Below, in pieces: positions 20,747 through 62,759 of a stretch of DNA of 64,000 nucleotides. Under the pieces are notes generated by a model that saw only the letters and a program-made list of their open reading frames with translations, was not told the origin of the DNA and did no database searches. The stretch covers positions 1-64,000 of the forward strand of contig NW_027451014.1 of the NCBI RefSeq assembly GCF_964194025.1, read 5' to 3'. The translations under genes were made by a program, and so were the position numbers. The DNA is from Convolutriloba macropyga (taxonomy: Eukaryota). How positions within the stretch are numbered: position 1 is the stretch's first letter; every line of letters begins with the position of its first letter.

Positions 20747-20794
20747 GGTGAAGCGCACAGCAAAATACAGTATGAGCCCACCCCAGAAGTTTGA

Positions 20795-23464: not shown

Positions 23465-23728
23465 GGTGAAGCGCACAGCAAAATACAGTATGAGCCCACC
23501 CCAGAAGTTTGAGCTATATTTAGAAATTGTGGAGAATTCACTGCCTCAAGGCCTTTGGCCAGTCAGGAAGCATTAAGTGGCATCATAGAACCACACGTCA
23601 GCATTAAAACGTACCAACGTACCACTGATAATCCTTTGTTCTTTTGCCCCACTGTGGGGCAGTAGTTTCCCCACCAGATTCACATACATAGGAGTTTACA
23701 GTGCTTTAACCCAGTTGCATTCTTGGGC

Positions 23729-24804
23729 TTAATACTTTGTGACGCCCCCTCTAGCATCTATGCATGCTTGCACTCGGTTTGGGATGGAGTTGTAGAATTT
23801 CATGAGTGTCTCATGGGGCATGTTGTCCCATTCTTCTTGCAGCGCATTTTGGAAATTTTGTTTTGTGAGCCCTGGTCTGTTGTTCACTTTCTTGCTACCC
23901 AGCCCCATACATTCTCAATCCAGCTGAGATCGGGGCTTTTGGCAGGCCAATCTAGTACCTTGAAGTCTTCTTGCTCAGATAGCCACCTAGTAACCTTCTT
24001 GGCAGTGTGGGCCTTGGCATTGTCTTGCTGCCAGACCCAATAAGCACCCATCCTGGCCCTGCTTGTGTGGGGCATCCTGGGCCTCATGAGTTCCCTGGCT
24101 GCTGGGATGAGCTTCTCCTTCAAGAGATCCAAGTACACCGTTGCATTCACGCCTTTGGAGTCCGCATGCATGCCTGTGGTCCCCACAGTGGCAAACAGGG
24201 GGCTCTTTCCATACTTGGTCACCACTGCATAGGCATGCACCTTGAAGCTGTGAGTTTCTGCAGCAATTACTGGTGGCTCTTCTCCATACATCACCCACAC
24301 CTTGTCCCCAGGGCCACGAGATACAAGCCAGAAGTTCTTGCTGTCACTGATAGCCGTGTCTTCCCATGGGCTATTGCCATACAAGCCTTGCATCTCGATG
24401 CAAAACTGCTCCCTGGCTGTCTTGTGTTGTTCAGTCAGAGTTGGCTTCTTTTTGGGCTTCATACGCTGCCCCATGTGCTTTCGAATGAACTTTCTGATAG
24501 ACTCTGCACTCGCTTCAATGCCCAGGCTGTCCCTCACGCGATTAGCGATGATAGAGCACGCCAATTGTTGACGGACGCCGTCCTCCACCAGCTGCATTAG
24601 CTCAGGGTTGGTTGCTGCCAGCTTGGCAGGCCTCCCAACCCGCTTACTGTCCTGCACGTCTTGGGTGAGCCTGTGACGCTGCACCCATTTCTTGACTGTC
24701 TTGACTCCGCATTTGTGCTTACGTGCCACTTGCTTGAAGTTGCCAAGCTGTTCGTAGCTCAAAACTAGCCGCCATCGCTTGGCGACACTCGTAGGAGAGC
24801 GCAT
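23729..24804 (-). pseudogene. DD35E transposase T3, frameshifted
   Basis: 1-bp deletion at ~23894 (CTTGCTACCC vs CTTGGCTACCC) truncates the protein after WGWVARK. Could be a sequencing error. Confidence 0.8.
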
Positions 24805-24991
24805 GGTGAAGCGCACAGCAAAATACAGTATGAGCCCACCCCAGAAGTTTGAGCTATATTTAGAAATTGTGGAGAATTCACTGCCTCAAGGCCTTTGGCC
24901 AGTCAGGAAGCATTAAGTGGCATCATAGAACCACACGTCAGCATTAAAACGTACCAACGTACCACTGATAATCCTTTGTTCTTTTGCCCCA

Positions 24992-26371
24992 CACTGCTCC
25001 ACAAAAGTCCGTACCCCCTTGTAAATCCCTATCACACAAATTGTGGCAATTGTCTGTCATCTATGCACTTCCTGACTGCCATTCACGTTAGTTTCAAAGA
25101 CCACCGCAAACATAATTTAGCCATTCATAGTCTTGGAGAAGAATCCACGGCATGTGGCCTTTTCGAGCCCCTGGAATATCAGTTAAAGGCTAGCCACACT
25201 CTTGAAAATCGCCCAAGAAATCGGTACGTGAAATAGTACTGAGCAGCCGTAGGCCATACGGTGGCAGGTTGGTCATTGATGCCAAGCTGTCACAATAGTG
25301 CACCGCTGAAAAATATCAAATTGCAAGTCCAATTCGTCATTGAGGAGGAAATGGCGTCCATATGTGGCCATTGGGTGAGGCAGAAGCTTGCCCGAATTCA
25401 TGGGCAGCCCTGTGAGCGAAAAACCCAATTTCGTCATACGGGCTCAGAACGGAGCGCTGTCAAGGCCAGCGTGAGCAGAATTTTCGCCGTCCCGGGCCAA
25501 GGGCTGGGGCTTAGCCCGGGTCAAAATCGATTGAGACCATAAAAAAGGGTACCTTGTTTCCTCACTAAAAAGATATGGCCATTTGAAGTTTTCGTGCAGC
25601 CTGAAACTGGGCCAAGTCGCCATATTTTGGCACAAATGCCTCATTGTAATGACCACTCCCTAAGGATGATGCATGCACTCCCATCCCACTCACATGAGGT
25701 GCAAAAACAAGCATTTTCAAGGCCTCCCCCACCTTTGGCATGGGCCCCTTTCCTACTCCCTTTCCAACCTTTTTTGCATTTTTCCAGTGAGAGGGTTAAA
25801 GGGGCACCACTGGTCAGGGCTCCCCTTACCACGTTGGGCAATGGCCCTCCCCACCAACCCTTGTGCACGATGCACTATCACCATGGGTTGGTTGGCGCAC
25901 GAATAGCATGGCTTGAGTGTCTCATCCATGGTGGAAGGACTCCAGATGGTGTCAACAAGGGGCCAAAATCGGGTCGCTCGAAATCACCAGCAAAGCACCA
26001 CCAACTCATGGGGCCCTAGTGTTGTAGGGTGTGGCCTTATGGGTCCAAGCTATGCATGACGAGAGACACATTATCCTTGCTACGATGTTATAAGGAACTG
26101 AGAAGTGATCACTCATGTCTCGAAATGTGACAATATTTTTAGTTTCAGGCAAAATCGAAGTAAACTCAACATGGAATTGCCTGACCATGGGCACCCCCAC
26201 CCACCATATAATGCATAACCTTACCATTGCGTTGACATCTAAGCCATGTAACGAGTCATAATGCATTGTTCTGCAGCCAAGGGAGCCAATGATGGTTTCG
26301 TAACTCAATGCATTGGCCTTTGACAAAATTATGGGAAAACTTTAGGGGGTGCAAACTTTTGTGGAGCAGTG
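24992..26371. mobile_element. Element A copy 3
   Basis: Same TIRs and junctions as copy 2. Confidence 0.9.
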
Positions 26372-26445
26372 TGGGGCAGTAGTTTCCCCACCAGATTCAC
26401 ATACATAGGAGTTTACAGTGCTTTAACCCAGTTGCATTCTTGGGC

Positions 26446-27522: not shown

Positions 27523-27786
27523 GGTGAAGCGCACAGCAAAATACAGTATGAGCCCACCCCAGAAGTTTGAGCTATATTTAGAAATTGTGGAGAATTCACT
27601 GCCTCAAGGCCTTTGGCCAGTCAGGAAGCATTAAGTGGCATCATAGAACCACACGTCAGCATTAAAACGTACCAACGTACCACTGATAATCCTTTGTTCT
27701 TTTGCCCCACTGTGGGGCAGTAGTTTCCCCACCAGATTCACATACATAGGAGTTTACAGTGCTTTAACCCAGTTGCATTCTTGGGC

Positions 27787-28863: not shown

Positions 28864-29127
28864 GGTGAAGCGCACAGCAAAATACAGTATGAGCCCACCC
28901 CAGAAGTTTGAGCTATATTTAGAAATTGTGGAGAATTCACTGCCTCAAGGCCTTTGGCCAGTCAGGAAGCATTAAGTGGCATCATAGAACCACACGTCAG
29001 CATTAAAACGTACCAACGTACCACTGATAATCCTTTGTTCTTTTGCCCCACTGTGGGGCAGTAGTTTCCCCACCAGATTCACATACATAGGAGTTTACAG
29101 TGCTTTAACCCAGTTGCATTCTTGGGC

Positions 29128-30204: not shown

Positions 30205-30391
30205 GGTGAAGCGCACAGCAAAATACAGTATGAGCCCACCCCAGAAGTTTGAGCTATATTTAGAAATTGTGGAGAATTCACTGCCTCAAGGCCTTTGGCC
30301 AGTCAGGAAGCATTAAGTGGCATCATAGAACCACACGTCAGCATTAAAACGTACCAACGTACCACTGATAATCCTTTGTTCTTTTGCCCCA

Positions 30392-31771
30392 CACTGCTCC
30401 ACAAAAGTCCGTACCCCCTTGTAAATCCCTATCACACAAATTGTGGCAATTGTCTGTCATCTATGCACTTCCTGACTGCCATTCACGTTAGTTTCAAAGA
30501 CCACCGCAAACATAATTTAGCCATTCATAGTCTTGGAGAAGAATCCACGGCATGTGGCCTTTTCGAGCCCCTGGAATATCAGTTAAAGGCTAGCCACACT
30601 CTTGAAAATCGCCCAAGAAATCGGTACGTGAAATAGTACTGAGCAGCCGTAGGCCATACGGTGGCAGGTTGGTCATTGATGCCAAGCTGTCACAATAGTG
30701 CACCGCTGAAAAATATCAAATTGCAAGTCCAATTCGTCATTGAGGAGGAAATGGCGTCCATATGTGGCCATTGGGTGAGGCAGAAGCTTGCCCGAATTCA
30801 TGGGCAGCCCTGTGAGCGAAAAACCCAATTTCGTCATACGGGCTCAGAACGGAGCGCTGTCAAGGCCAGCGTGAGCAGAATTTTCGCCGTCCCGGGCCAA
30901 GGGCTGGGGCTTAGCCCGGGTCAAAATCGATTGAGACCATAAAAAAGGGTACCTTGTTTCCTCACTAAAAAGATATGGCCATTTGAAGTTTTCGTGCAGC
31001 CTGAAACTGGGCCAAGTCGCCATATTTTGGCACAAATGCCTCATTGTAATGACCACTCCCTAAGGATGATGCATGCACTCCCATCCCACTCACATGAGGT
31101 GCAAAAACAAGCATTTTCAAGGCCTCCCCCACCTTTGGCATGGGCCCCTTTCCTACTCCCTTTCCAACCTTTTTTGCATTTTTCCAGTGAGAGGGTTAAA
31201 GGGGCACCACTGGTCAGGGCTCCCCTTACCACGTTGGGCAATGGCCCTCCCCACCAACCCTTGTGCACGATGCACTATCACCATGGGTTGGTTGGCGCAC
31301 GAATAGCATGGCTTGAGTGTCTCATCCATGGTGGAAGGACTCCAGATGGTGTCAACAAGGGGCCAAAATCGGGTCGCTCGAAATCACCAGCAAAGCACCA
31401 CCAACTCATGGGGCCCTAGTGTTGTAGGGTGTGGCCTTATGGGTCCAAGCTATGCATGACGAGAGACACATTATCCTTGCTACGATGTTATAAGGAACTG
31501 AGAAGTGATCACTCATGTCTCGAAATGTGACAATATTTTTAGTTTCAGGCAAAATCGAAGTAAACTCAACATGGAATTGCCTGACCATGGGCACCCCCAC
31601 CCACCATATAATGCATAACCTTACCATTGCGTTGACATCTAAGCCATGTAACGAGTCATAATGCATTGTTCTGCAGCCAAGGGAGCCAATGATGGTTTCG
31701 TAACTCAATGCATTGGCCTTTGACAAAATTATGGGAAAACTTTAGGGGGTGCAAACTTTTGTGGAGCAGTG
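30392..31771. mobile_element. Element A copy 4
   Basis: Same TIRs and junctions as copy 2. Confidence 0.9.
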
Positions 31772-31845
31772 TGGGGCAGTAGTTTCCCCACCAGATTCAC
31801 ATACATAGGAGTTTACAGTGCTTTAACCCAGTTGCATTCTTGGGC

Positions 31846-32922: not shown

Positions 32923-33186
32923 GGTGAAGCGCACAGCAAAATACAGTATGAGCCCACCCCAGAAGTTTGAGCTATATTTAGAAATTGTGGAGAATTCACT
33001 GCCTCAAGGCCTTTGGCCAGTCAGGAAGCATTAAGTGGCATCATAGAACCACACGTCAGCATTAAAACGTACCAACGTACCACTGATAATCCTTTGTTCT
33101 TTTGCCCCACTGTGGGGCAGTAGTTTCCCCACCAGATTCACATACATAGGAGTTTACAGTGCTTTAACCCAGTTGTATTCTTGGGC

Positions 33187-34263: not shown

Positions 34264-34526
34264 GGTGAAGCGCACAGCAAAATACAGTATGAGCCCACCC
34301 CAGAAGTTTGAGCTATATTTAGAAATTGTGGAGAATTCACTGCCTCAAGGCCTTTGGCCAGTCAGGAAGCATTAAGTGGCATCATAGAACCACACGTCAG
34401 CATTAAAACGTACCAACGTACCCTGATAATCCTTTGTTCTTTTGCCCCACTGTGGGGCAGTAGTTTCCCCACCAGATTCACATACATAGGAGTTTACAGT
34501 GCTTTAACCCAGTTGCATTCTTGGGC

Positions 34527-35790: not shown

Positions 35791-37170
35791 CACTGCTCCA
35801 CAAAAGTCCGTACCCCCTTGTAAATCCCTATCACACAAATTGTGGCAATTGTCTGTCATCTATGCACTTCCTGACTGCCATTCACGTTAGTTTCAAAGAC
35901 CACCGCAAACATAATTTAGCCATTCATAGTCTTGGAGAAGAATCCACGGCATGTGGCCTTTTCGAGCCCCTGGAATATCAGTTAAAGGCTAGCCACACTC
36001 TTGAAAATCGCCCAAGAAATCGGTACGTGAAATAGTACTGAGCAGCCGTAGGCCATACGGTGGCAGGTTGGTCATTGATGCCAAGCTGTCACAATAGTGC
36101 ACCGCTGAAAAATATCAAATTGCAAGTCCAATTCGTCATTGAGGAGGAAATGGCGTCCATATGTGGCCATTGGGTGAGGCAGAAGCTTGCCCGAATTCAT
36201 GGGCAGCCCTGTGAGCGAAAAACCCAATTTCGTCATACGGGCTCAGAACGGAGCGCTGTCAAGGCCAGCGTGAGCAGAATTTTCGCCGTCCCGGGCCAAG
36301 GGCTGGGGCTTAGCCCGGGTCAAAATCGATTGAGACCATAAAAAAGGGTACCTTGTTTCCTCACTAAAAAGATATGGCCATTTGAAGTTTTCGTGCAGCC
36401 TGAAACTGGGCCAAGTCGCCATATTTTGGCACAAATGCCTCATTGTAATGACCACTCCCTAAGGATGATGCATGCACTCCCATCCCACTCACATGAGGTG
36501 CAAAAACAAGCATTTTCAAGGCCTCCCCCACCTTTGGCATGGGCCCCTTTCCTACTCCCTTTCCAACCTTTTTTGCATTTTTCCAGTGAGAGGGTTAAAG
36601 GGGCACCACTGGTCAGGGCTCCCCTTACCACGTTGGGCAATGGCCCTCCCCACCAACCCTTGTGCACGATGCACTATCACCATGGGTTGGTTGGCGCACG
36701 AATAGCATGGCTTGAGTGTCTCATCCATGGTGGAAGGACTCCAGATGGTGTCAACAAGGGGCCAAAATCGGGTCGCTCGAAATCACCAGCAAAGCACCAC
36801 CAACTCATGGGGCCCTAGTGTTGTAGGGTGTGGCCTTATGGGTCCAAGCTATGCATGACGAGAGACACATTATCCTTGCTACGATGTTATAAGGAACTGA
36901 GAAGTGATCACTCATGTCTCGAAATGTGACAATATTTTTAGTTTCAGGCAAAATCGAAGTAAACTCAACATGGAATTGCCTGACCATGGGCACCCCCACC
37001 CACCATATAATGCATAACCTTACCATTGCGTTGACATCTAAGCCATGTAACGAGTCATAATGCATTGTTCTGCAGCCAAGGGAGCCAATGATGGTTTCGT
37101 AACTCAATGCATTGGCCTTTGACAAAATTATGGGAAAACTTTAGGGGGTGCAAACTTTTGTGGAGCAGTG
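35791..37170. mobile_element. Element A copy 5
   Basis: Same TIRs and junctions as copy 2. Confidence 0.9.
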
Positions 37171-37244
37171 TGGGGCAGTAGTTTCCCCACCAGATTCACA
37201 TACATAGGAGTTTACAGTGCTTTAACCCAGTTGCATTCTTGGGC

Positions 37245-38321: not shown

Positions 38322-38585
38322 GGTGAAGCGCACAGCAAAATACAGTATGAGCCCACCCCAGAAGTTTGAGCTATATTTAGAAATTGTGGAGAATTCACTG
38401 CCTCAAGGCCTTTGGCCAGTCAGGAAGCATTAAGTGGCATCATAGAACCACACGTCAGCATTAAAACGTACCAACGTACCACTGATAATCCTTTGTTCTT
38501 TTGCCCCACAGTGGGGCAGTAGTTTCCCCACCAGATTCACATACATAGGAGTTTACAGTGCTTTAACCCAGTTGCATTCTTGGGC

Positions 38586-39662
38586 TTAATACTTTGTGAC
38601 GCCCCCTCTAGCATCTATGCATGCTTGCACTCGGTTTGGGATGGAGTTGTAGAATTTCATGAGTGTCTCATGGGGCATGTTGTCCCATTCTTCTTGCAGC
38701 GCATTTTGGAAATTTTGTTTTGTGAGCCCTGGTCTGTTGTTCACTTTCTTGGCTACCCAGCCCCATACATTCTCAATCCAGCTGAGATCGGGGCTTTTGG
38801 CAGGCCAATCTAGTACCTTGAAGTCTTCTTGCTCAGATAGCCACCTAGTAACCTTCTTGGCAGTGTGGGCCTTGGCATTGTCTTGCTGCCAGACCCAATA
38901 AGCACCCATCCTGGCCCTGCTTGTGTGGGGCATCCTGGGCCTCATGAGTTCCCTGGCTGCTGGGATGAGCTTCTCCTTCAAGAGATCCAAGTACACCGTT
39001 GCATTCACGCCTTTGGAGTCCGCATGCATGCCTGTGGTCCCCACAGTGGCAAACAGGGGGCTCTTTCCATACTTGGTCACCACTGCATAGGCATGCACCT
39101 TGAAGCTGTGAGTTTCTGCAGCAATTACTGGTGGCTCTTCTCCATACATCACCCACACCTTGTCCCCAGGGCCACGAGATACAAGCCAGAAGTTCTTGCT
39201 GTCACTGATAGCCGTGTCTTCCCATGGGCTATTGCCATACAAGCCTTGCATCTCGATGCAAAACTGCTCCCTAGCTGTCTTGTGTTGTTCAGTCAGAGTT
39301 GGCTTCTTTTTGGGCTTCATACGCTGCCCCATGTGCTTTCGAATGAACTTTCTGATAGACTCTGCACTCGCTTCAATGCCCAGGCTGTCCCTCACGCGAT
39401 TAGCGATGATAGAGCACGCCAATTGTTGACGGACGCCGTCCTCCACCAGCTGCATTAGCTCAGGGTTGGTTGCTGCCAGCTTGGCAGGCCTCCCAACCCG
39501 CTTACTGTCCTGCACGTCTTGGGTGAGCCTGTGACGCTGCACCCATTTCTTGACTGTCTTGACTCCGCATTTGTGCTTACGTGCCACTTGCTTGAAGTTG
39601 CCAAGCTGTTCGTAGCTCAAAACTAGCCGCCATCGCTTGGCGACACTCGTAGGAGAGCGCAT
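38586..39662 (-). CDS. DD35E transposase T11
   Basis: Protein identical to T1; synonymous SNP at 39273. Confidence 0.95.
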   Translation of the reverse strand: MRSPTSVAKRWRLVLSYEQLGNFKQVARKHKCGVKTVKKWVQRHRLTQDVQDSKRVGRPAKLAATNPELMQLVEDGVRQQLACSIIANRVRDSLGIEASAESIRKFIRKHMGQRMKPKKKPTLTEQHKTAREQFCIEMQGLYGNSPWEDTAISDSKNFWLVSRGPGDKVWVMYGEEPPVIAAETHSFKVHAYAVVTKYGKSPLFATVGTTGMHADSKGVNATVYLDLLKEKLIPAARELMRPRMPHTSRARMGAYWVWQQDNAKAHTAKKVTRWLSEQEDFKVLDWPAKSPDLSWIENVWGWVAKKVNNRPGLTKQNFQNALQEEWDNMPHETLMKFYNSIPNRVQACIDARGGVTKY

Positions 39663-39926
39663 GGTGAAGCGCACAGCAAAATACAGTATGAGCCCACCCC
39701 AGAAGTTTGAGCTATATTTAGAAATTGTGGAGAATTCACTGCCTCAAGGCCTTTGGCCAGTCAGGAAGCATTAAGTGGCATCATAGAACCACACGTCAGC
39801 ATTAAAACGTACCAACGTACCACTGATAATCCTTTGTTCTTTTGCCCCACTGTGGGGCAGTAGTTTCCCCACCAGATTCACATACATAGGAGTTTACAGT
39901 GCTTTAACCCAGTTGCATTCTTGGGC

Positions 39927-41003
39927 TTAATACTTTGTGACGCCCCCTCTAGCATCTATGCATGCTTGCACTCGGTTTGGGATGGAGTTGTAGAATTTCA
40001 TGAGTGTCTCATGGGGCATGTTGTCCCATTCTTCTTGCAGCGCATTTTGGAAATTTTGTTTTGTGAGCCCTGGTCTGTTGTTCACTTTCTTGGCTACCCA
40101 GCCCCATACATTCTCAATCCAGCTGAGATCGGGGCTTTTGGCAGGCCAATCTAGTACCTTGAAGTCTTCTTGCTCAGATAGCCACCTAGTAACCTTCTTG
40201 GCAGTGTGGGCCTTGGCATTGTCTTGCTGCCAGACCCAATAAGCACCCATCCTGGCCCTGCTTGTGTGGGGCATCCTGGGCCTCATGAGTTCCCTGGCTG
40301 CTGGGATGAGCTTCTCCTTCAAGAGATCCAAGTACACCGTTGCATTCACGCCTTTGGAGTCCGCATGCATGCCTGTGGTCCCCACAGTGGCAAACAGGGG
40401 GCTCTTTCCATACTTGGTCACCACTGCATAGGCATGCACCTTGAAGCTGTGAGTTTCTGCAGCAATTACTGGTGGCTCTTCTCCATACATCACCCACACC
40501 TTGTCCCCAGGGCCACGAGATACAAGCCAGAAGTTCTTGCTGTCACTGATAGCCGTGTCTTCCCATGGGCTATTGCCATACAAGCCTTGCATCTCGATGC
40601 AAAACTGCTCCCTGGCTGTCTTGTGTTGTTCAGTCAGAGTTGGCTTCTTTTTGGGCTTCATACGCTGCCCCATGTGCTTTCGAATGAACTTTCTGATAGA
40701 CTCTGCACTCGCTTCAATGCCCAGGCTGTCCCTCACGCGATTAGCGATGATAGAGCACGCCAATTGTTGACGGACGCCGTCCTCCACCAGCTGCATTAGC
40801 TCAGGGTTGGTTGCTGCCAGCTTGGCAGGCCTCCCAACCCGCTTACTGTCCTGCACGTCTTGGGTGAGCCTGTGACGCTGCACCCATTTCTTGACTGTCT
40901 TGACTCCGCATTTGTGCTTACGTGCCACTTGCTTGAAGTTGCCAAGCTGTTCGTAGCTCAAAACTAGCCGCCATCGCTTGGCGACACTCGTAGGAGAGCG
41001 CAT
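39927..41003 (-). CDS. DD35E transposase T12
   Basis: Protein identical to T1. Confidence 0.95.
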   Translation of the reverse strand: MRSPTSVAKRWRLVLSYEQLGNFKQVARKHKCGVKTVKKWVQRHRLTQDVQDSKRVGRPAKLAATNPELMQLVEDGVRQQLACSIIANRVRDSLGIEASAESIRKFIRKHMGQRMKPKKKPTLTEQHKTAREQFCIEMQGLYGNSPWEDTAISDSKNFWLVSRGPGDKVWVMYGEEPPVIAAETHSFKVHAYAVVTKYGKSPLFATVGTTGMHADSKGVNATVYLDLLKEKLIPAARELMRPRMPHTSRARMGAYWVWQQDNAKAHTAKKVTRWLSEQEDFKVLDWPAKSPDLSWIENVWGWVAKKVNNRPGLTKQNFQNALQEEWDNMPHETLMKFYNSIPNRVQACIDARGGVTKY

Positions 41004-41267
41004 GGTGAAGCGCACAGCAAAATACAGTATGAGCCCACCCCAGAAGTTTGAGCTATATTTAGAAATTGTGGAGAATTCACTGCCTCAAGGCCTTTGGCCA
41101 GTCAGGAAGCATTAAGTGGCATCATAGAACCACACGTCAGCATTAAAACGTACCAACGTACCACTGATAATCCTTTGTTCTTTTGCCCCACAGTGGGGCA
41201 GTAGTTTCCCCACCAGATTCACATACATAGGAGTTTACAGTGCTTTAACCCAGTTGCATTCTTGGGC

Positions 41268-42344
41268 TTAATACTTTGTGACGCCCCCTCTAGCATCTAT
41301 GCATGCTTGCACTCGGTTTGGGATGGAGTTGTAGAATTTCATGAGTGTCTCATGGGGCATGTTGTCCCATTCTTCTTGCAGCGCATTTTGGAAATTTTGT
41401 TTTGTGAGCCCTGGTCTGTTGTTCACTTTCTTGGCTACCCAGCCCCATACATTCTCAATCCAGCTGAGATCGGGGCTTTTGGCAGGCCAATCTAGTACCT
41501 TGAAGTCTTCTTGCTCAGATAGCCACCTAGTAACCTTCTTGGCAGTGTGGGCCTTGGCATTGTCTTGCTGCCAGACCCAATAAGCACCCATCCTGGCCCT
41601 GCTTGTGTGGGGCATCCTGGGCCTCATGAGTTCCCTGGCTGCTGGGATGAGCTTCTCCTTCAAGAGATCCAAGTACACCGTTGCATTCACGCCTTTGGAG
41701 TCCGCATGCATGCCTGTGGTCCCCACAGTGGCAAACAGGGGGCTCTTTCCATACTTGGTCACCACTGCATAGGCATGCACCTTGAAGCTGTGAGTTTCTG
41801 CAGCAATTACTGGTGGCTCTTCTCCATACATCACCCACACCTTGTCCCCAGGGCCACGAGATACAAGCCAGAAGTTCTTGCTGTCACTGATAGCCGTGTC
41901 TTCCCATGGGCTATTGCCATACAAGCCTTGCATCTCGATGCAAAACTGCTCCCTAGCTGTCTTGTGTTGTTCAGTCAGAGTTGGCTTCTTTTTGGGCTTC
42001 ATACGCTGCCCCATGTGCTTTCGAATGAACTTTCTGATAGACTCTGCACTCGCTTCAATGCCCAGGCTGTCCCTCACGCGATTAGCGATGATAGAGCACG
42101 CCAATTGTTGACGGACGCCGTCCTCCACCAGCTGCATTAGCTCAGGGTTGGTTGCTGCCAGCTTGGCAGGCCTCCCAACCCGCTTACTGTCCTGCACGTC
42201 TTGGGTGAGCCTGTGACGCTGCACCCATTTCTTGACTGTCTTGACTCCGCATTTGTGCTTACGTGCCACTTGCTTGAAGTTGCCAAGCTGTTCGTAGCTC
42301 AAAACTAGCCGCCATCGCTTGGCGACACTCGTAGGAGAGCGCAT
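41268..42344 (-). CDS. DD35E transposase T13
   Basis: Protein identical to T1; same synonymous SNP as T11 at 41955. Confidence 0.95.
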   Translation of the reverse strand: MRSPTSVAKRWRLVLSYEQLGNFKQVARKHKCGVKTVKKWVQRHRLTQDVQDSKRVGRPAKLAATNPELMQLVEDGVRQQLACSIIANRVRDSLGIEASAESIRKFIRKHMGQRMKPKKKPTLTEQHKTAREQFCIEMQGLYGNSPWEDTAISDSKNFWLVSRGPGDKVWVMYGEEPPVIAAETHSFKVHAYAVVTKYGKSPLFATVGTTGMHADSKGVNATVYLDLLKEKLIPAARELMRPRMPHTSRARMGAYWVWQQDNAKAHTAKKVTRWLSEQEDFKVLDWPAKSPDLSWIENVWGWVAKKVNNRPGLTKQNFQNALQEEWDNMPHETLMKFYNSIPNRVQACIDARGGVTKY

Positions 42345-42608
42345 GGTGAAGCGCACAGCAAAATACAGTATGAGCCCACCCCAGAAGTTTGAGCTATATT
42401 TAGAAATTGTGGAGAATTCACTGCCTCAAGGCCTTTGGCCAGTCAGGAAGCATTAAGTGGCATCATAGAACCACACGTCAGCATTAAAACGTACCAACGT
42501 ACCACTGATAATCCTTTGTTCTTTTGCCCCACAGTGGGGCAGTAGTTTCCCCACCAGATTCACATACATAGGAGTTTACAGTGCTTTAACCCAGTTGCAT
42601 TCTTGGGC

Positions 42609-43685
42609 TTAATACTTTGTGACGCCCCCTCTAGCATCTATGCATGCTTGCACTCGGTTTGGGATGGAGTTGTAGAATTTCATGAGTGTCTCATGGGGCA
42701 TGTTGTCCCATTCTTCTTGCAGCGCATTTTGGAAATTTTGTTTTGTGAGCCCTGGTCTGTTGTTCACTTTCTTGGCTACCCAGCCCCATACATTCTCAAT
42801 CCAGCTGAGATCGGGGCTTTTGGCAGGCCAATCTAGTACCTTGAAGTCTTCTTGCTCAGATAGCCACCTAGTAACCTTCTTGGCAGTGTGGGCCTTGGCA
42901 TTGTCTTGCTGCCAGACCCAATAAGCACCCATCCTGGCCCTGCTTGTGTGGGGCATCCTGGGCCTCATGAGTTCCCTGGCTGCTGGGATGAGCTTCTCCT
43001 TCAAGAGATCCAAGTACACCGTTGCATTCACGCCTTTGGAGTCCGCATGCATGCTTGTGGTCCCCACAGTGGCAAACAGGGGGCTCTTTCCATACTTGGT
43101 CACCACTGCATAGGCATGCACCTTGAAGCTGTGAGTTTCTGCAGCAATTACTGGTGGCTCTTCTCCATACATCACCCACACCTTGTCCCCAGGGCCACGA
43201 GATACAAGCCAGAAGTTCTTGCTGTCACTGATAGCCGTGTCTTCCCATGGGCTATTGCCATACAAGCCTTGCATCTCGATGCAAAACTGCTCCCTGGCTG
43301 TCTTGTGTTGTTCAGTCAGAGTTGGCTTCTTTTTGGGCTTCATACGCTGCCCCATGTGCTTTCGAATGAACTTTCTGATAGACTCTGCACTCGCTTCAAT
43401 GCCCAGGCTGTCCCTCACGCGATTAGCGATGATAGAGCACGCCAATTGTTGACGGACGCCGTCCTCCACCAGCTGCATTAGCTCAGGGTTGGTTGCTGCC
43501 AGCTTGGCAGGCCTCCCAACCCGCTTACTGTCCTGCACGTCTTGGGTGAGCCTGTGACGCTGCACCCATTTCTTGACTGTCTTGACTCCGCATTTGTGCT
43601 TACGTGCCACTTGCTTGAAGTTGCCAAGCTGTTCGTAGCTCAAAACTAGCCGCCATCGCTTGGCGACACTCGTAGGAGAGCGCAT
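42609..43685 (-). CDS. DD35E transposase T14
   Basis: One substitution (GTTGM to GTTSM). Confidence 0.95.
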   Translation of the reverse strand: MRSPTSVAKRWRLVLSYEQLGNFKQVARKHKCGVKTVKKWVQRHRLTQDVQDSKRVGRPAKLAATNPELMQLVEDGVRQQLACSIIANRVRDSLGIEASAESIRKFIRKHMGQRMKPKKKPTLTEQHKTAREQFCIEMQGLYGNSPWEDTAISDSKNFWLVSRGPGDKVWVMYGEEPPVIAAETHSFKVHAYAVVTKYGKSPLFATVGTTSMHADSKGVNATVYLDLLKEKLIPAARELMRPRMPHTSRARMGAYWVWQQDNAKAHTAKKVTRWLSEQEDFKVLDWPAKSPDLSWIENVWGWVAKKVNNRPGLTKQNFQNALQEEWDNMPHETLMKFYNSIPNRVQACIDARGGVTKY

Positions 43686-43872
43686 GGTGAAGCGCACAGC
43701 AAAATACAGTATGAGCCCACCCCAGAAGTTTGAGCTATATTTAGAAATTGTGGAGAATTCACTGCCTCAAGGCCTTTGGCCAGTCAGGAAGCATTAAGTG
43801 GCATCATAGAACCACACGTCAGCATTAAAACGTACCAACGTACCACTGATAATCCTTTGTTCTTTTGCCCCA

Positions 43873-45252
43873 CACTGCTCCACAAAAGTCCGTACCCCCT
43901 TGTAAATCCCTATCACACAAATTGTGGCAATTGTCTGTCATCTATGCACTTCCTGACTGCCATTCACGTTAGTTTCAAAGACCACCGCAAACATAATTTA
44001 GCCATTCATAGTCTTGGAGAAGAATCCACGGCATGTGGCCTTTTCGAGCCCCTGGAATATCAGTTAAAGGCTAGCCACACTCTTGAAAATCGCCCAAGAA
44101 ATCGGTACGTGAAATAGTACTGAGCAGCCGTAGGCCATACGGTGGCAGGTTGGTCATTGATGCCAAGCTGTCACAATAGTGCACCGCTGAAAAATATCAA
44201 ATTGCAAGTCCAATTCGTCATTGAGGAGGAAATGGCGTCCATATGTGGCCATTGGGTGAGGCAGAAGCTTGCCCGAATTCATGGGCAGCCCTGTGAGCGA
44301 AAAACCCAATTTCGTCATACGGGCTCAGAACGGAGCGCTGTCAAGGCCAGCGTGAGCAGAATTTTCGCCGTCCCGGGCCAAGGGCTGGGGCTTAGCCCGG
44401 GTCAAAATCGATTGAGACCATAAAAAAGGGTACCTTGTTTCCTCACTAAAAAGATATGGCCATTTGAAGTTTTCGTGCAGCCTGAAACTGGGCCAAGTCG
44501 CCATATTTTGGCACAAATGCCTCATTGTAATGACCACTCCCTAAGGATGATGCATGCACTCCCATCCCACTCACATGAGGTGCAAAAACAAGCATTTTCA
44601 AGGCCTCCCCCACCTTTGGCATGGGCCCCTTTCCTACTCCCTTTCCAACCTTTTTTGCATTTTTCCAGTGAGAGGGTTAAAGGGGCACCACTGGTCAGGG
44701 CTCCCCTTACCACGTTGGGCAATGGCCCTCCCCACCAACCCTTGTGCACGATGCACTATCACCATGGGTTGGTTGGCGCACGAATAGCATGGCTTGAGTG
44801 TCTCATCCATGGTGGAAGGACTCCAGATGGTGTCAACAAGGGGCCAAAATCGGGTCGCTCGAAATCACCAGCAAAGCACCACCAACTCATGGGGCCCTAG
44901 TGTTGTAGGGTGTGGCCTTATGGGTCCAAGCTATGCATGACGAGAGACACATTATCCTTGCTACGATGTTATAAGGAACTGAGAAGTGATCACTCATGTC
45001 TCGAAATGTGACAATATTTTTAGTTTCAGGCAAAATCGAAGTAAACTCAACATGGAATTGCCTGACCATGGGCACCCCCACCCACCATATAATGCATAAC
45101 CTTACCATTGCGTTGACATCTAAGCCATGTAACGAGTCATAATGCATTGTTCTGCAGCCAAGGGAGCCAATGATGGTTTCGTAACTCAATGCATTGGCCT
45201 TTGACAAAATTATGGGAAAACTTTAGGGGGTGCAAACTTTTGTGGAGCAGTG
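43873..45252. mobile_element. Element A copy 6
   Basis: Same TIRs and junctions as copy 2. Confidence 0.9.
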
Positions 45253-47744: not shown

Positions 47745-48008
47745 GGTGAAGCGCACAGCAAAATACAGTATGAGCCCACCCCAGAAGTTTGAGCTATATT
47801 TAGAAATTGTGGAGAATTCACTGCCTCAAGGCCTTTGGCCAGTCAGGAAGCATTAAGTGGCATCATAGAACCACACGTCAGCATTAAAACGTACCAACGT
47901 ACCACTGATAATCCTTTGTTCTTTTGCCCCACTGTGGGGCAGTAGTTTCCCAACCAGATTCACATACATAGGAGTTTACAGTGCTTTAACCCAGTTGCAT
48001 TCTTGGGC

Positions 48009-49085
48009 TTAATACTTTGTGACGCCCCCTCTAGCATCTATGCATGCTTGCACTCGGTTTGGGATGGAGTTGTAGAATTTCATGAGTGTCTCATGGGGCA
48101 TGTTGTCCCATTCTTCTTGCAGCGCATTTTGGAAATTTTGTTTTGTGAGCCCTGGTCTGTTGTTCACTTTCTTGGCTACCCAGCCCCATACATTCTCAAT
48201 CCAGCTGAGATCGGGGCTTTTGGCAGGCCAATCTAGTACCTTGAAGTCTTCTTGCTCAGATAGCCACCTAGTAACCTTCTTGGCAGTGTGGGCCTTGGCA
48301 TTGTCTTGCTGCCAGACCCAATAAGCACCCATCCTGGCCCTGCTTGTGTGGGGCATCCTGGGCCTCATGAGTTCCCTGGCTGCTGGGATGAGCTTCTCCT
48401 TCAAGAGATCCAAGTACACCGTTGCATTCACGCCTTTGGAGTCCGCATGCATGCCTGTGGTCCCCACAGTGGCAAACAGGGGGCTCTTTCCATACTTGGT
48501 CACCACTGCATAGGCATGCACCTTGAAGCTGTGAGTTTCTGCAGCAATTACTGGTGGCTCTTCTCCATACATCACCCACACCTTGTCCCCAGGGCCACGA
48601 GATACAAGCCAGAAGTTCTTGCTGTCACTGATAGCCGTGTCTTCCCATGGGCTATTGCCATACAAGCCTTGCATCTCGATGCAAAACTGCTCCCTGGCTG
48701 TCTTGTGTTGTTCAGTCAGAGTTGGCTTCTTTTTGGGCTTCATACGCTGCCCCATGTGCTTTCGAATGAACTTTCTGATAGACTCTGCACTCGCTTCAAT
48801 GCCCAGGCTGTCCCTCACGCGATTAGCGATGATAGAGCACGCCAATTGTTGACGGACGCCGTCCTCCACCAGCTGCATTAGCTCAGGGTTGGTTGCTGCC
48901 AGCTTGGCAGGCGTCCCAACCCGCTTACTGTCCTGCACGTCTTGGGTGAGCCTGTGACGCTGCACCCATTTCTTGACTGTCTTGACTCCGCATTTGTGCT
49001 TACGTGCCACTTGCTTGAAGTTGCCAAGCTGTTCGTAGCTCAAAACTAGCCGCCATCGCTTGGCGACACTCGTAGGAGAGCGCAT
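48009..49085 (-). CDS. DD35E transposase T17
   Basis: One substitution in the GRP motif (GRP to GTP). Confidence 0.95.
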   Translation of the reverse strand: MRSPTSVAKRWRLVLSYEQLGNFKQVARKHKCGVKTVKKWVQRHRLTQDVQDSKRVGTPAKLAATNPELMQLVEDGVRQQLACSIIANRVRDSLGIEASAESIRKFIRKHMGQRMKPKKKPTLTEQHKTAREQFCIEMQGLYGNSPWEDTAISDSKNFWLVSRGPGDKVWVMYGEEPPVIAAETHSFKVHAYAVVTKYGKSPLFATVGTTGMHADSKGVNATVYLDLLKEKLIPAARELMRPRMPHTSRARMGAYWVWQQDNAKAHTAKKVTRWLSEQEDFKVLDWPAKSPDLSWIENVWGWVAKKVNNRPGLTKQNFQNALQEEWDNMPHETLMKFYNSIPNRVQACIDARGGVTKY

Positions 49086-49349
49086 GGTGAAGCGCACAGC
49101 AAAATACAGTATGAGCCCACCCCAGAAGTTTGAGCTATATTTAGAAATTGTGGAGAATTCACTGCCTCAAGGCCTTTGGCCAGTCAGGAAGCATTAAGTG
49201 GCATCATAGAACCACACGTCAGCATTAAAACGTACCAACGTACCACTGATAATCCTTTGTTCTTTTGCCCCACTGTGGGGCAGTAGTTTCCCAACCAGAT
49301 TCACATACATAGGAGTTTACAGTGCTTTAACCCAGTTGCATTCTTGGGC

Positions 49350-50426: not shown

Positions 50427-50690
50427 GGTGAAGCGCACAGCAAAATACAGTATGAGCCCACCCCAGAAGTTTGAGCTATATTTAGAAATTGTGGAGAATT
50501 CACTGCCTCAAGGCCTTTGGCCAGTCAGGAAGCATTACGTGGCATCATAGAACCACACGTCAGCATTAAAACGTACCAACGTACCACTGATAATCCTTTG
50601 TTCTTTTGCCCCACTGTGGGGCAGTAGTTTCCCCACCAGATTCACATACATAGGAGTTTACAGTGCTTTAACCCAGTTGCATTCTTGGGC

Positions 50691-51767: not shown

Positions 51768-52031
51768 GGTGAAGCGCACAGCAAAATACAGTATGAGCCC
51801 ACCCCAGAAGTTTGAGCTATATTTAGAAATTGTGGAGAATTCACTGCCTCAAGGCCTTTGGCCAGTCAGGAAGCATTAAGTGGCATCATAGAACCACACG
51901 TCAGCATTAAAACGTACCAACGTACCACTGATAATCCTTTGTTCTTTTGCCCCACTGTGGGGCAGTAGTTTCCCCACCAGATTCACATACATAGGAGTTT
52001 ACAGTGCTTTAACCCAGTTGCATTCTTGGGC

Positions 52032-53108: not shown

Positions 53109-53372
53109 GGTGAAGCGCACAGCAAAATACAGTATGAGCCCACCCCAGAAGTTTGAGCTATATTTAGAAATTGTGGAGAATTCACTGCCTCAAGGCCTTT
53201 GGCCAGTCAGGAAGCATTAAGTGGCATCATAGAACCACACGTCAGCATTAAAACGTACCAACGTACCACTGATAATCCTTTGTTCTTTTGCCCCACTGTG
53301 GGGCAGTAGTTTCCCCACCAGATTCACATACATAGGAGTTTACAGTGCTTTAACCCAGTTGCATTCTTGGGC

Positions 53373-54449: not shown

Positions 54450-54713
54450 GGTGAAGCGCACAGCAAAATACAGTATGAGCCCACCCCAGAAGTTTGAGCT
54501 ATATTTAGAAATTGTGGAGAATTCACTGCCTCAAGGCCTTTGGCCAGTCAGGAAGCATTAAGTGGCATCATAGAACCACACGTCAGCATTAAAACGTACC
54601 AACGTACCACTGATAATCCTTTGTTCTTTTGCCCCACTGTGGGGCAGTAGTTTCCCCACCAGATTCACATACATAGGAGTTTACAGTGCTTTAACCCAGT
54701 TGCATTCTTGGGC

Positions 54714-55790: not shown

Positions 55791-56054
55791 GGTGAAGCGC
55801 ACAGCAAAATACAGTATGAGCCCACCCCAGAAGTTTGAGCTATATTTAGAAATTGTGGAGAATTCACTGCCTCAAGGCCTTTGGCCAGTCAGGAAGCATT
55901 AAGTGGCATCATAGAACCACACGTCAGCATTAAAACGTACCAACGTACCACTGATAATCCTTTGTTCTTTTGCCCCACTGTGGGGCAGTAGTTTCCCCAC
56001 CAGATTCACATACATAGGAGTTTACAGTGCTTTAACCCAGTTGCATTCTTGGGC

Positions 56055-57131: not shown

Positions 57132-57395
57132 GGTGAAGCGCACAGCAAAATACAGTATGAGCCCACCCCAGAAGTTTGAGCTATATTTAGAAATTGTGGA
57201 GAATTCACTGCCTCAAGGCCTTTGGCCAGTCAGGAAGCATTAAGTGGCATCATAGAACCACACGTCAGCATTAAAACGTACCAACGTACCACTGATAATC
57301 CTTTGTTCTTTTGCCCCACTGTGGGGCAGTAGTTTCCCCACCAGATTCACATACATAGGAGTTTACAGTGCTTTAACCCAGTTGCATTCTTGGGC

Positions 57396-58472: not shown

Positions 58473-58736
58473 GGTGAAGCGCACAGCAAAATACAGTATG
58501 AGCCCACCCCAGAAGTTTGAGCTATATTTAGAAATTGTGGAGAATTCACTGCCTCAAGGCCTTTGGCCAGTCAGGAAGCATTAAGTGGCATCATAGAACC
58601 ACACGTCAGCATTAAAACGTACCAACGTACCACTGATAATCCTTTGTTCTTTTGCCCCACAGTGGGGCAGTAGTTTCCCCACCAGATTCACATACATAGG
58701 AGTTTACAGTGCTTTAACCCAGTTGCATTCTTGGGC

Positions 58737-59813: not shown

Positions 59814-60077
59814 GGTGAAGCGCACAGCAAAATACAGTATGAGCCCACCCCAGAAGTTTGAGCTATATTTAGAAATTGTGGAGAATTCACTGCCTCAAGG
59901 CCTTTGGCCAGTCAGGAAGCATTAAGTGGCATCATAGAACCACACGTCAGCATTAAAACGTACCAACGTACCACTGATAATCCTTTGTTCTTTTGCCCCA
60001 CTGTGGGGCAGTAGTTTCCCCACCAGATTCACATACATAGGAGTTTACAGTGCTTTAACCCAGTTGCATTCTTGGGC

Positions 60078-61154
60078 TTAATACTTTGTGACGCCCCCTC
60101 TAGCATCTATGCATGCTTGCACTCGGTTTGGGATGGAGTTGTAGAATTTCATGAGTGTCTCATGGGGCATGTTGTCCCATTCTTCTTGCAGCGCATTTTG
60201 GAAATTTTGTTTTGTGAGCCCTGGTCTGTTGTTCACTTTCTTGGCTACCCAGCCCCATACATTCTCAATCCAGCTGAGATCGGGGCTTTTGGCAGGCCAA
60301 TCTAGTACCTTGAAGTCTTCTTGCTCAGATAGCCACCTAGTAACCTTCTTGGCAGTGTGGGCCTTGGCATTGTCTTGCTGCCAGACCCAATAAGCACCCA
60401 TCCTGGCCCTGCTTGTGTGGGGCATCCTGGGCCTCATGAGTTCCCTGGCTGCTGGGATGAGCTTCTCCTTCAAGAGATCCAAGTACACCGTTGCATTCAC
60501 GCCTTTGGAGTCCGCATGCATGCCTGTGGTCCCCACAGTGGCAAACAGGGGGCTCTTTCCATACTTGGTCACCACTGCATAGGCATGCACCTTGAAGCTG
60601 TGAGTTTCTGCAGCAATTACTGGTGGCTCTTCTCCATACATCACCCACACCTTGTCCCCAGGGCCACGAGATACAAGCCAGAAGTTCTTGCTGTCACTGA
60701 TAGCCGTGTCTTCCCATGGGCTATTGCCATACAAGCCTTGCATCTCGATGCAAAACTGCTCCCTGGCTGTCTTGTGTTGTTCAGTCAGAGTTGGCTTCTT
60801 TTTGGGCTTCATACGCTGCCCCATGTGCTTTCGAATGAACTTTCTGATAGACTCTGCACTCGCTTCAATGCCCAGGCTGTCCCTCACGCGATTAGCGATG
60901 ATAGAGCACGCCAATTGTTGACGGACGCCGTCCTCCACCAGCTGCATTAGCTCAGGGTTGGTTGCTGCCAGCTTGGCAGGCCTCCCAACCCGCTTACTGT
61001 CCTGCACGTCTTGGGTGAGCCTGTGACGCTGCACCCATTTCTTGACTGTCTTGACTCCGCATTTGTGCTTACGTGCCACTTGCTTGAAGTTGCCAAGCTG
61101 TTCGTAGCTCAAAACTAGCCGCCATCGCTTGGCGACACTCGTAGGAGAGCGCAT
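60078..61154 (-). CDS. DD35E transposase T26
   Basis: Protein identical to T1. Confidence 0.95.
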   Translation of the reverse strand: MRSPTSVAKRWRLVLSYEQLGNFKQVARKHKCGVKTVKKWVQRHRLTQDVQDSKRVGRPAKLAATNPELMQLVEDGVRQQLACSIIANRVRDSLGIEASAESIRKFIRKHMGQRMKPKKKPTLTEQHKTAREQFCIEMQGLYGNSPWEDTAISDSKNFWLVSRGPGDKVWVMYGEEPPVIAAETHSFKVHAYAVVTKYGKSPLFATVGTTGMHADSKGVNATVYLDLLKEKLIPAARELMRPRMPHTSRARMGAYWVWQQDNAKAHTAKKVTRWLSEQEDFKVLDWPAKSPDLSWIENVWGWVAKKVNNRPGLTKQNFQNALQEEWDNMPHETLMKFYNSIPNRVQACIDARGGVTKY

Positions 61155-61418
61155 GGTGAAGCGCACAGCAAAATACAGTATGAGCCCACCCCAGAAGTTT
61201 GAGCTATATTTAGAAATTGTGGAGAATTCACTGCCTCAAGGCCTTTGGCCAGTCAGGAAGCATTAAGTGGCATCATAGAACCACACGTCAGCATTAAAAC
61301 GTACCAACGTACCACTGATAATCCTTTGTTCTTTTGCCCCACTGTGGGGCAGTAGTTTCCCCACCAGATTCACATACATAGGAGTTTACAGTGCTTTAAC
61401 CCAGTTGCATTCTTGGGC

Positions 61419-62495
61419 TTAATACTTTGTGACGCCCCCTCTAGCATCTATGCATGCTTGCACTCGGTTTGGGATGGAGTTGTAGAATTTCATGAGTGTC
61501 TCATGGGGCATGTTGTCCCATTCTTCTTGCAGCGCATTTTGGAAATTTTGTTTTGTGAGCCCTGGTCTGTTGTTCACTTTCTTGGCTACCCAGCCCCATA
61601 CATTCTCAATCCAGCTGAGATCGGGGCTTTTGGCAGGCCAATCTAGTACCTTGAAGTCTTCTTGCTCAGATAGCCACCTAGTAACCTTCTTGGCAGTGTG
61701 GGCCTTGGCATTGTCTTGCTGCCAGACCCAATAAGCACCCATCCTGGCCCTGCTTGTGTGGGGCATCCTGGGCCTCATGAGTTCCCTGGCTGCTGGGATG
61801 AGCTTCTCCTTCAAGAGATCCAAGTACACCGTTGCATTCACGCCTTTGGAGTCCGCATGCATGCCTGTGGTCCCCACAGTGGCAAACAGGGGGCTCTTTC
61901 CATACTTGGTCACCACTGCATAGGCATGCACCTTGAAGCTGTGAGTTTCTGCAGCAATTACTGGTGGCTCTTCTCCATACATCACCCACACCTTGTCCCC
62001 AGGGCCACGAGATACAAGCCAGAAGTTCTTGCTGTCACTGATAGCCGTGTCTTCCCATGGGCTATTGCCATACAAGCCTTGCATCTCGATGCAAAACTGC
62101 TCCCTGGCTGTCTTGTGTTGTTCAGTCAGAGTTGGCTTCTTTTTGGGCTTCATACGCTGCCCCATGTGCTTTCGAATGAACTTTCTGATAGACTCTGCAC
62201 TCGCTTCAATGCCCAGGCTGTCCCTCACGCGATTAGCGATGATAGAGCACGCCAATTGTTGACGGACGCCGTCCTCCACCAGCTGCATTAGCTCAGGGTT
62301 GGTTGCTGCCAGCTTGGCAGGCCTCCCAACCCGCTTACTGTCCTGCACGTCTTGGGTGAGCCTGTGACGCTGCACCCATTTCTTGACTGTCTTGACTCCG
62401 CATTTGTGCTTACGTGCCACTTGCTTGAAGTTGCCAAGCTGTTCGTAGCTCAAAACTAGCCGCCATCGCTTGGCGACACTCGTAGGAGAGCGCAT
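61419..62495 (-). CDS. DD35E transposase T27
   Basis: Protein identical to T1. Confidence 0.95.
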   Translation of the reverse strand: MRSPTSVAKRWRLVLSYEQLGNFKQVARKHKCGVKTVKKWVQRHRLTQDVQDSKRVGRPAKLAATNPELMQLVEDGVRQQLACSIIANRVRDSLGIEASAESIRKFIRKHMGQRMKPKKKPTLTEQHKTAREQFCIEMQGLYGNSPWEDTAISDSKNFWLVSRGPGDKVWVMYGEEPPVIAAETHSFKVHAYAVVTKYGKSPLFATVGTTGMHADSKGVNATVYLDLLKEKLIPAARELMRPRMPHTSRARMGAYWVWQQDNAKAHTAKKVTRWLSEQEDFKVLDWPAKSPDLSWIENVWGWVAKKVNNRPGLTKQNFQNALQEEWDNMPHETLMKFYNSIPNRVQACIDARGGVTKY

Positions 62496-62759
62496 GGTGA
62501 AGCGCACAGCAAAATACAGTATGAGCCCACCCCAGAAGTTTGAGCTATATTTAGAAATTGTGGAGAATTCACTGCCTCAAGGCCTTTGGCCAGTCAGGAA
62601 GCATTAAGTGGCATCATAGAACCACACGTCAGCATTAAAACGTACCAACGTACCACTGATAATCCTTTGTTCTTTTGCCCCACAGTGGGGCAGTAGTTTC
62701 CCCACCAGATTCACATACATAGGAGTTTACAGTGCTTTAACCCAGTTGCATTCTTGGGC

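Follow-up and report, generated by a model that had tools for sequence, protein, structure and literature searches.

Arrays and circle junctions of Tc1-like elements

In the excision of Tc1/mariner elements the transposase's cut on the non-transferred strand lies a few nucleotides within the element, so that 3' overhangs remain (PMC6943129). Excision of Sleeping Beauty (SB) produces the footprints TACAGTA or TACTGTA, and in the junctions of SB circles the two ends are joined through a common terminal triplet, CTG or CAG, without TA, the two forms being the expected resolutions of a central T:T mismatch (Kesselring et al. 2020, PMC6943129, Fig. 6B legend); some of the sequenced junctions are simple religations of the ends after canonical excision (PMC6943129). 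In the chromosomes of Drosophila melanogaster the Tc1-like element Bari1 forms a cluster of about 80 head-to-tail copies, for which rolling-circle copying of a circle was proposed and which reviewers consider enigmatic and without a comparable example (PMC8834629). Here we describe a tandem array in Convolutriloba macropyga, located in positions 1-64,000 (forward strand) of contig NW_027451014.1 of assembly GCF_964194025.1; this whole stretch of 64,000 nt is referred to as the window. The array is composed of a transposase-bearing unit, T, and a non-coding unit with terminal inverted repeats (TIRs), A. The joints between neighbouring T units have the form TGCCCCA-CWG-TGGGGCA (W being A or T), and the central triplet is CTG in 16 of them and CAG in the other 6.

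By analogy, the T-T joint matches the published expectation for an SB circle junction. On such comparisons the locus appears closest to the SB circle junction and the canonical footprint in its chemistry, and closest to Bari1 in its genome organisation. The canonical Tc1/SB footprint, TAC(A/T)GTA, resembles the T-T joints in the annealing of 3-nt overhangs, the central mismatch and the C(A/T)G dimorphism, but it marks an empty donor site between two TA dinucleotides, whereas here the triplet lies between two element cores without TA. SB circles are episomal, come from transfected cells and are dead ends for transposition, whereas the window holds 22 such joints in a row, chromosomal and inherited. 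The two transposases share fold and sequence family, the SB structure 5CR4 being the only PDB match of T, but SB is a DD34E enzyme with DNDPKH and T a DD35E enzyme with DNAKAH. The heterochromatic Bari1 clusters (h39 and X) likewise consist of dozens of complete, homogeneous Tc1-like elements in head-to-tail order; their joints have no target-site duplication and all lack terminal nucleotides, and circles have been suggested as their source. However, every Bari1 copy uniformly lacks its first 2 nt and shows no dimorphism, the array ends in only part of an element, and the cluster is specific to one species and has no partner element; here a common 3-bp triplet exists in two states, the cap is a complete TA-flanked A unit, the A partner is obligatory, and the organisation is found again in some 20 diverged lineages.

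Circle junctions and (IS)2 dimers of the insertion sequences (IS) IS911, IS30 and IS21 have abutted tips 2-3 bp apart, head-to-tail order and TG...CA cores. The T joints resemble them in tip spacing, tandem order and TG...CA cores, but the bacterial elements belong to other families, use copy-out-paste-in and take the spacer from flanking DNA, whereas T is of the IS630/Tc1 type and its spacer is the element's own tip. We rejected an IS3/IS30-type mechanism in spite of the similar cores and 3-bp spacer, because the transposase is of another family and the triplet, where TA adjoins it, is a part of the element. Signal joints of V(D)J recombination are flush heptamer-to-heptamer fusions of blunt ends, which RAG makes through hairpinned coding ends. 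They are like the T joints in that the ends of an excised segment are fused together, and unlike them in having no common overhang nucleotides and no amplification in arrays; the analogy has been drawn for SB circles too (PMC6943129). Finally, dimers of transposable elements formed by double insertion can grow into arrays by unequal exchange, and such dimers are recognised by a target-site duplication that persists within the joint (McGurk and Barbash 2018, PMC5932611). Linked single-nucleotide polymorphisms (SNPs) indicate that unequal exchange operates here as well, but an origin from double-insertion dimers is ruled out, since no T-T or T-A joint contains TA.

Structure of the array and of the T-T joints

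The array starts at 18216, directly 3' of a TA, and its right end lies beyond the window. It contains at least 28 T units, each with a 1338-bp core (TGGGGCAGTAG...TTTTGCCCCA), and six A units of 1380 bp, in the order A T A TT A TTT A TTT A TTTTT A and, after the sixth A, a run of 14 T or more. All 34 units (28 T and 6 A) have the same orientation, and units of either kind are 99.97-100% identical. Successive joints are 1341 bp apart, or about 4059 bp where another element intervenes. From left to right the T runs between A units lengthen (1, 2, 3, 3, 5 and at least 14). The components are:

18214-18215, no strand: TA dinucleotide at the left array edge; in Logan contigs from four runs of the organism, TA likewise precedes CACTGCTCC at four or more other flanks
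18216-19595, plus strand: A unit 1, the array cap; non-coding TIR element with tips CAC...GTG and TIR CACTGCTCCACAAAAGT
19596-64000, minus strand: array body, with 28 T units (transposase gene on the minus strand) and five further A units
20934-22313, plus strand: A unit 2, bordered by TGCCCCA-CAC-TGCTCCA on the left and TGGAGCA-GTG-TGGGGCA on the right
24992-26371, plus strand: A unit 3
30392-31771, plus strand: A unit 4
35791-37170, plus strand: A unit 5
43873-45252, plus strand: A unit 6

The pattern TGCCCCACWGTGGGGCA has 22 matches in the window and none in shuffled sequences. When the spacing between cores was scanned from 0 to 12 bp, nothing was found but CTG (16 times) and CAG (6 times, starting at 38509, 41191, 42532, 46591, 58660 and 62683), so that the counts, positions and exact 3-bp spacing given in a preliminary description of this DNA were all reproduced. 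All 22 joints thus contain exactly one triplet that is common to both ends. The ratio of 16 to 6 does not differ significantly from 1:1 (P 0.052), and the two forms are not clustered along the array (8 runs, P 0.24, runs test). We also considered the triplets as a 3-bp target-site duplication and ruled this out, as the triplets on either side of A are inverted relative to each other (CAC...GTG, CAG...CTG) and are not direct repeats. The T-T joints, with T units numbered from the left, are:

23645-23661: CTG
27703-27719: CTG
29044-29060: CTG
33103-33119: CTG
34443-34459: CTG
38502-38518: CAG, left of T11, which bears a private SNP at column 762
39843-39859: CTG
41184-41200: CAG, left of T13, which has the column-762 SNP in common with T11; probably copied by a 2-unit duplication
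42525-42541: CAG; CTG at the same place in metagenome contig L001
46584-46600: CAG
47925-47941: CTG
49266-49282: CTG
50607-50623: CTG
51948-51964: CTG
53289-53305: CTG
54630-54646: CTG
55971-55987: CTG
57312-57328: CTG
58653-58669: CAG
59994-60010: CTG
61335-61351: CTG
62676-62692: CAG

Variation at the joint centre

Three independent comparisons identify the joint centre as a true hot spot. Within the window, the 27 full T cores have 11 minor-allele cells among 36,126 (diversity 0.0003) and no column in which the minor count exceeds 2, whereas the minor form occurs in 6 of the 22 joint centres, so that variability at this position is about 900 times that elsewhere in T. The independently assembled metagenome contig L001 (4479 bp) differs from window positions 39476-43954 at three sites, one of which, 42533, is a joint centre (CTG in the contig, CAG in the window); this contig itself holds both joint forms. 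In a family of relatives that is only 41-49% identical in protein, two contigs from different metagenomes (L027 and L039) show three differences in about 950 aligned bases, and one of them is again the joint centre, CACC-CAG-CATGG versus CACC-CTG-CATGG. The 17-bp palindrome of the window folds into a hairpin whose stem has 7 bp and whose loop is CTG (-7.7 kcal/mol, z -4.0), whereas the joint of L027/L039 forms no hairpin (-0.6 kcal/mol). Because the latter is dimorphic nevertheless, a mutation process specific to palindromes is not sufficient to explain the variation of the centre.

Heterogeneity was also seen at the level of reads. Across the joint, the Logan contigs of a single run split into two bubble arms of 60 nt, with depths of 7.27 (the arm matching the reference) and 6.0; the second arm differs from the reference by a single letter, which the table does not name, so that the read-level check proposed in the preliminary description is borne out as to two arms of comparable depth, and not as to the identity of the letter.

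These arms also bear on whether the dimorphism, or the array itself, could have arisen from collapse or polishing of a long, nearly identical repeat during assembly. The array is longer than typical reads and its units are almost identical, the 1-bp deletions found in T3 and T8 could be consensus errors, and a related array was output as a 'circular' contig. On the other hand, the two arms of similar depth come from separately built Logan contigs, the independently assembled L001 holds both forms, and the same joints appear in SPAdes, MEGAHIT and hifiasm contigs from many samples. An artefact of this kind is therefore highly improbable.

The T transposase

The transposase was characterised on a representative copy:

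48009-49097, minus strand: transposase open reading frame (ORF), 362 aa from GTG or 358 aa from ATG, with HTH_Tnp_Tc3_2 and DDE_3 domains

The DDE_3 domain is matched with an E-value of 2.2e-11 (Pfam) and the N-terminal HTH_Tnp_Tc3_2 with 3.7e-9, while HTH_23 remains below its curated cut-off (21.3 versus 24.6 bits). Residues D158, D265 and E301 are invariant among 17 relatives, which gives the DD35E signature, and the sole sequence match in PDB is the catalytic domain of SB100X (5CR4, E-value 2.5e-22). The ORF is intact in 26 of the 27 full T copies; 1-bp deletions occur in T3 and T8. Judged from these catalytic-domain and HTH features, which are those of the superfamily, T classifies as a DD35E Tc1/Sleeping-Beauty-like element. 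We examined the residue equivalent to K248 as a possible clue to circle formation and discarded it, since the DNAKAH of T belongs to the natural A246/non-K248 class, common to Bari, Minos, Tc3 and mariner, and is nothing specific.

Element A and the T-A joints

The six A units are 100% identical and have a 27-bp TIR. At the T-A joints of the window there are always 3 bp between the cores, and the triplet is always A's own: the joint reads TGCCCCA-CAC-TGCTCCA and is mirrored on the other side of A. The left array edge reads TA/CAC-TGCTCC (the slash marks the element boundary), and right array edges in relatives read ...GGAGGA-CTG/TA (L006) and ...GGAGGA-CCG/TA (L098); each of these observations of TA beside A comes from one edge of an array. 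The terminal triplet thus belongs to A when A is flanked by TA. It follows that the cores start at position 4 of a Tc1-like end, and hence that a 3-bp joint represents two ends with one common triplet. The TIR of T comprises about 10-14 bp, C(A/T)G plus TGGGGCA at both ends, with the triplet deduced from the joints; with this reservation for T, both A and T fit the Tc1-type TIR start CAGTG/CACTG.

A has no conserved ORF. The 141-aa ORFs of A and of its equivalent in L006 are unrelated, which rules A out as a coding partner. An Rfam scan of 18000-24000 gave no match in A and one weak match in the flank, and a tRNA search of 1-24000 found none. Conservation of A among relatives is limited to the TIRs and a block of about 115 nt. 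This block (21417-21534, positions 484-601 of every A unit) is 79-87% conserved in two relatives (L004 and L005) whose transposases are only 59-61% identical, while the rest of A evolves fast; the block has no Rfam or tRNA match.

The tips of A vary among lineages. They are CAC/GTG in this genome and CAG/CTG in L100-102, relatives with a T about 90% identical in DNA, whereas L002 has one of each kind, CAG/GTG; CAC/GTG tips occur also in the distant lineages L020, L021 and L023. Both tips seem to change in step, and to have done so more than once.

Distribution among relatives

Relatives were gathered by exact-protein look-ups and a metagenome scan. The same T/A organisation was found in about 20 lineages, down to about 44% protein identity, with 3-bp joints and constant relative orientation. 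T and A alternate in them with contig periods of about 2.65-2.76 kb, (T A)n being the common form, and T-T joints (CAG, CTG or CG) occur in at least seven diverged lineages. The same joints are seen in SPAdes, MEGAHIT and hifiasm assemblies alike. The triplets are as follows:

L100-102 (T about 90% identical in DNA; one TARA sample included): joints CAG / CTG
L002: joints CAG / GTG
L004, L005, L019, L026: CAG, with CTG on A's other side where seen
L020, L021, L023, L025, L028: CAC, with GTG on A's other side where seen
L006, T-T joints: CAG
L007, T-T joints: CTG in 9 of 9
L010-12, T-T joints: CTG
L030, T-T joints: CAG
L027/L039, T-T joints: both forms
L098, T-T joints: CG only, 2 bp

The TIR of A is well conserved across lineages, and the ends of T are short and lineage-specific. 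Compared by eye, the two ends of T are TTGGA/TTGGA, TAGGAC/TAGGAC, TGGGGCA/TGGGGCA and TGGGAATTATGT versus TGGGAAATTATGT; this co-variation within lineages suggests that T has real, if minimal, TIRs.

Three of the related contigs deserve a description. L007 (ERZ25878734 ctg14747c) is a 16,188-bp contig labelled circular by the assembler; the 11.5 kb examined contain T-type units only, with a period of 1283 bp and CTG in all joints. Either a multimeric circle or collapse of an array could account for it, and the assembler's label is weak evidence of an extrachromosomal circle; otherwise, the joints were observed in chromosomal arrays and assembled contigs. L098 belongs to a 43%-identity family, and its 2-bp T-T joint at 1269-1527 lacks the centre; the right tip of its A is CCG both at the A-T joint and beside the flanking TA. 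L006 is a long-read contig with an [A T T A] array, the right edge of which (13735) is clean, ...CTG/TA, while the left A tip (8487) is degenerate, with about 4 nt altered relative to the internal copy.

Duplication of joints within the array

T11 and T13 have in common a private SNP (column 762) and both carry CAG on their left, and blocks 5 and 6 of the array both open with A-T-CAG-T-CTG. The linked SNP shows that at least one CAG joint is a copy. Two founder joint types, which could even be the daughters of one mismatched joint, together with unequal exchange could have generated the interspersed pattern. For these reasons, and in view of the uniform joints of L007, the repeated independent joining that the preliminary description derived from the interspersed order of the two forms is unproven. 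Rolling-circle copying of one circle as the sole origin was rejected, since it predicts uniform joints as in L007 and the pattern here is interspersed; as one contributor it may have played a part.

Copying could go further still. A single founder joint may have been amplified in the manner of a satellite by unequal sister-chromatid exchange, with CAG derived from CTG by mutation of the centre, such as a hairpin-mediated template switch that inverts the 3-nt loop, and then spread by duplication and gene conversion. The palindrome does fold with CTG as its loop, and inversion of that loop gives CAG; the common start of blocks 5 and 6 points to copying of multi-unit blocks, the T11/T13 pair is in line with it, the unit identity of 99.97-100% is that expected under strong homogenisation, and L007 is uniform. 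However, the same CAG/CTG difference occurs in L027/L039 without a hairpin, while L010, with a strong hairpin, has only CTG. In addition, a T-to-A transversion would have to reach 27%, with a comparable share in reads, when no other of the 1338 columns exceeds a minor count of 2, an unlikely coincidence (about 1 in 1341 for the position alone), and the founder itself, with its exact 3 bp and no TA, still requires an overhang mechanism. We regard this explanation as unlikely. Of the suggestion that linked SNPs might trace the CAG joints to one ordinary point mutation, the copying of at least one joint was substantiated, and an origin of all CAG joints from one mutation stays on as this less favoured alternative.

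Origin of the joints

The explanation that we favour, by a little better than even chance, is that the joints derive from T's own CAG...CTG ends, cut with a 3-nt stagger and joined, and that the joints then spread in the chromosome within an A-capped composite. T would be a cut-and-paste element with the full ends CAG-TGGGGCA...TGCCCCA-CTG, and its transposase, if it acts like others of its family, would cut the non-transferred strand 3 nt inside each end, so that either end would retain a CTG-3' overhang. Both ends of a single T could then anneal through C-G and G-C pairs around a central T:T mismatch, whose repair or replication would yield either CTG or CAG. The product would be core-C(T/A)G-core without TA, that is, a joint of the circle type. 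Such joints would probably enter the chromosome when T circles recombine homologously with T copies already resident there; whole-unit unequal exchange or duplication certainly multiplies them too, and the outcome would be a head-to-tail array of one orientation between A copies. The conserved Tc1-like TIRs of A, which bear the TA-flanked outer end, would carry out insertion at TA. Under this scheme we infer at least two types of de novo joint.

The tips of A provide the strongest local argument for T's own ends as the source of the overhangs: they are CAC/GTG here, so that their overhangs cannot pair and CWG cannot come from A's present ends. The T-T joints of at least seven diverged lineages, the co-variation of T's two ends as judged by eye, and the two bubble arms of comparable depth count in its favour as well. 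The single orientation and the identical overhang at both T ends imply that joining is intramolecular, giving a circle, or takes place between neighbours, and the one orientation of all 28 T and 6 A units rules out random ligation of free excised elements. As to the 3-nt overhang end-joining that the preliminary description had read from the joints, its account of CAG...CTG Tc1-type overhangs giving CAG or CTG agrees with the SB work (PMC6943129), and the joint structure, the SB100X match, the TA-flanked ends of A and the hot spot speak for it as well.

Several observations weigh against T's own ends as the donor. A solo copy of T in the form TA/CAGTGGGGCA...TGCCCCACTG/TA, which the preliminary description had proposed to look for, was found neither in the window nor in the roughly 20 related lineages. 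Exact-pattern scans for the T end and the TA-flanked T end found none in genome_contigs and viral_contigs, a weak result as these collections probably do not include this organism. In four Logan runs the T unitig ends exactly at G/TGGGGCA...TGCCCCA/C, and in run X6 its depth is roughly the sum of those of the T-T and T-A branches. As no T with its own triplets beside TA was found, the joints are the only source from which the terminal CAG/CTG of T is deduced. Both in the window and in relatives, T-A joints always contain the triplet of A, never that of T, which symmetric annealing does not predict unless there was one ancient T-A pairing or A's bound ends are protected. Circles of SB are dead ends for transposition (PMC6943129), so that a separate return route to the chromosome must be assumed, and the nine identical joints of L007 and the copying seen in T11/T13 imply that amplification needs no new joints.

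Some of these observations would be expected if the overhangs were A's and not T's. Each T-T joint would then be the footprint of an excised A, a canonical Tc1/SB footprint without TA: the CAG 3' overhangs left by A on the T flanks would anneal with an A:A mismatch and give T-C(A/T)G-T, and the T runs would result from successive loss of A. A has long conserved TIRs and is the unit found beside TA; in all lineages examined the triplet of the T-A joints is A's own, no solo T is seen, and (T A)n is common in relatives. Orientation would be kept automatically, independent 50:50 outcomes fit the random-looking order (P 0.24) and the comparable arm depths, the 2-bp CG joint of L098 looks like a non-canonical footprint, and the relatives with CAG-tipped A are accommodated as well as by T's own ends. 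In this genome, however, every A tip is CAC/GTG, and two CAC-3' overhangs cannot pair and give no CWG. CAC-tipped A ends adjoin TA at several loci and appear usable, yet none of the 22 joints has a CAC-derived scar. All 22 joints would have to be older than a very recent change of the tips from CAG to CAC, a relative about 90% identical in DNA still having CAG/CTG, with no excision of a CAC-tipped A since then; moreover, the T-only L007, with nine of nine joints identical, is unlike a set of independent footprints. On balance this origin appears improbable, and joining of T's own ends remains the explanation that we prefer.

Implications for Tc1-like elements

Circles of Tc1/mariner elements have so far been seen experimentally and were treated as dead-end by-products. 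The array carries the predicted signature of 3-nt overhang joining, with both outcomes of the mismatch, at 22 joints, and it looks like a rare natural record of circle-type joints preserved in a germline. The signature of overhang joining holds, which lends the interpretation partial support; T is the likelier donor of the overhangs, and joining may have taken place independently more than once. The locus offers a natural system in which to study the circularisation of excised DNA transposons and the return of such joints to chromosomes, the conversion of transposons to satellite-like arrays, and the reasons for the lasting link between a transposase unit and a non-coding TIR partner. As a built-in marker, the joint centre could tell de novo from copied joints in population data.

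A broader and rather doubtful possibility is that the transposase-gene unit T is routinely amplified through circle-type joints that re-enter the germline by recombination, while the ends of A move the A-capped arrays, as a two-part 'inside-out' system kept down to about 44% transposase identity. If this were true, circles would not be dead ends in this widespread marine Tc1-like lineage and would constitute a pathway that increases copy number.

Copy number and flanking sequence

In run X5 the word depth in Logan contigs is about 2170 for T and about 600-700 for A, against about 20-50 for unique flank; if runs X5-X8 represent DNA, the genome would contain on the order of 50-100 copies of T and 15-30 of A. 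The host flank to the left of the array contains a tract of about 30 C (11536-11565) and one of about 32 G (16953-16984), each 93% pure and about 5.4 kb apart, which form an inverted homopolymer pair. An ORF of 357 aa in the same flank (8314-9387, plus strand) has a C-terminal stretch, CAIVGSS...DVVIRFN, that resembles a sialyltransferase L-motif by eye only.

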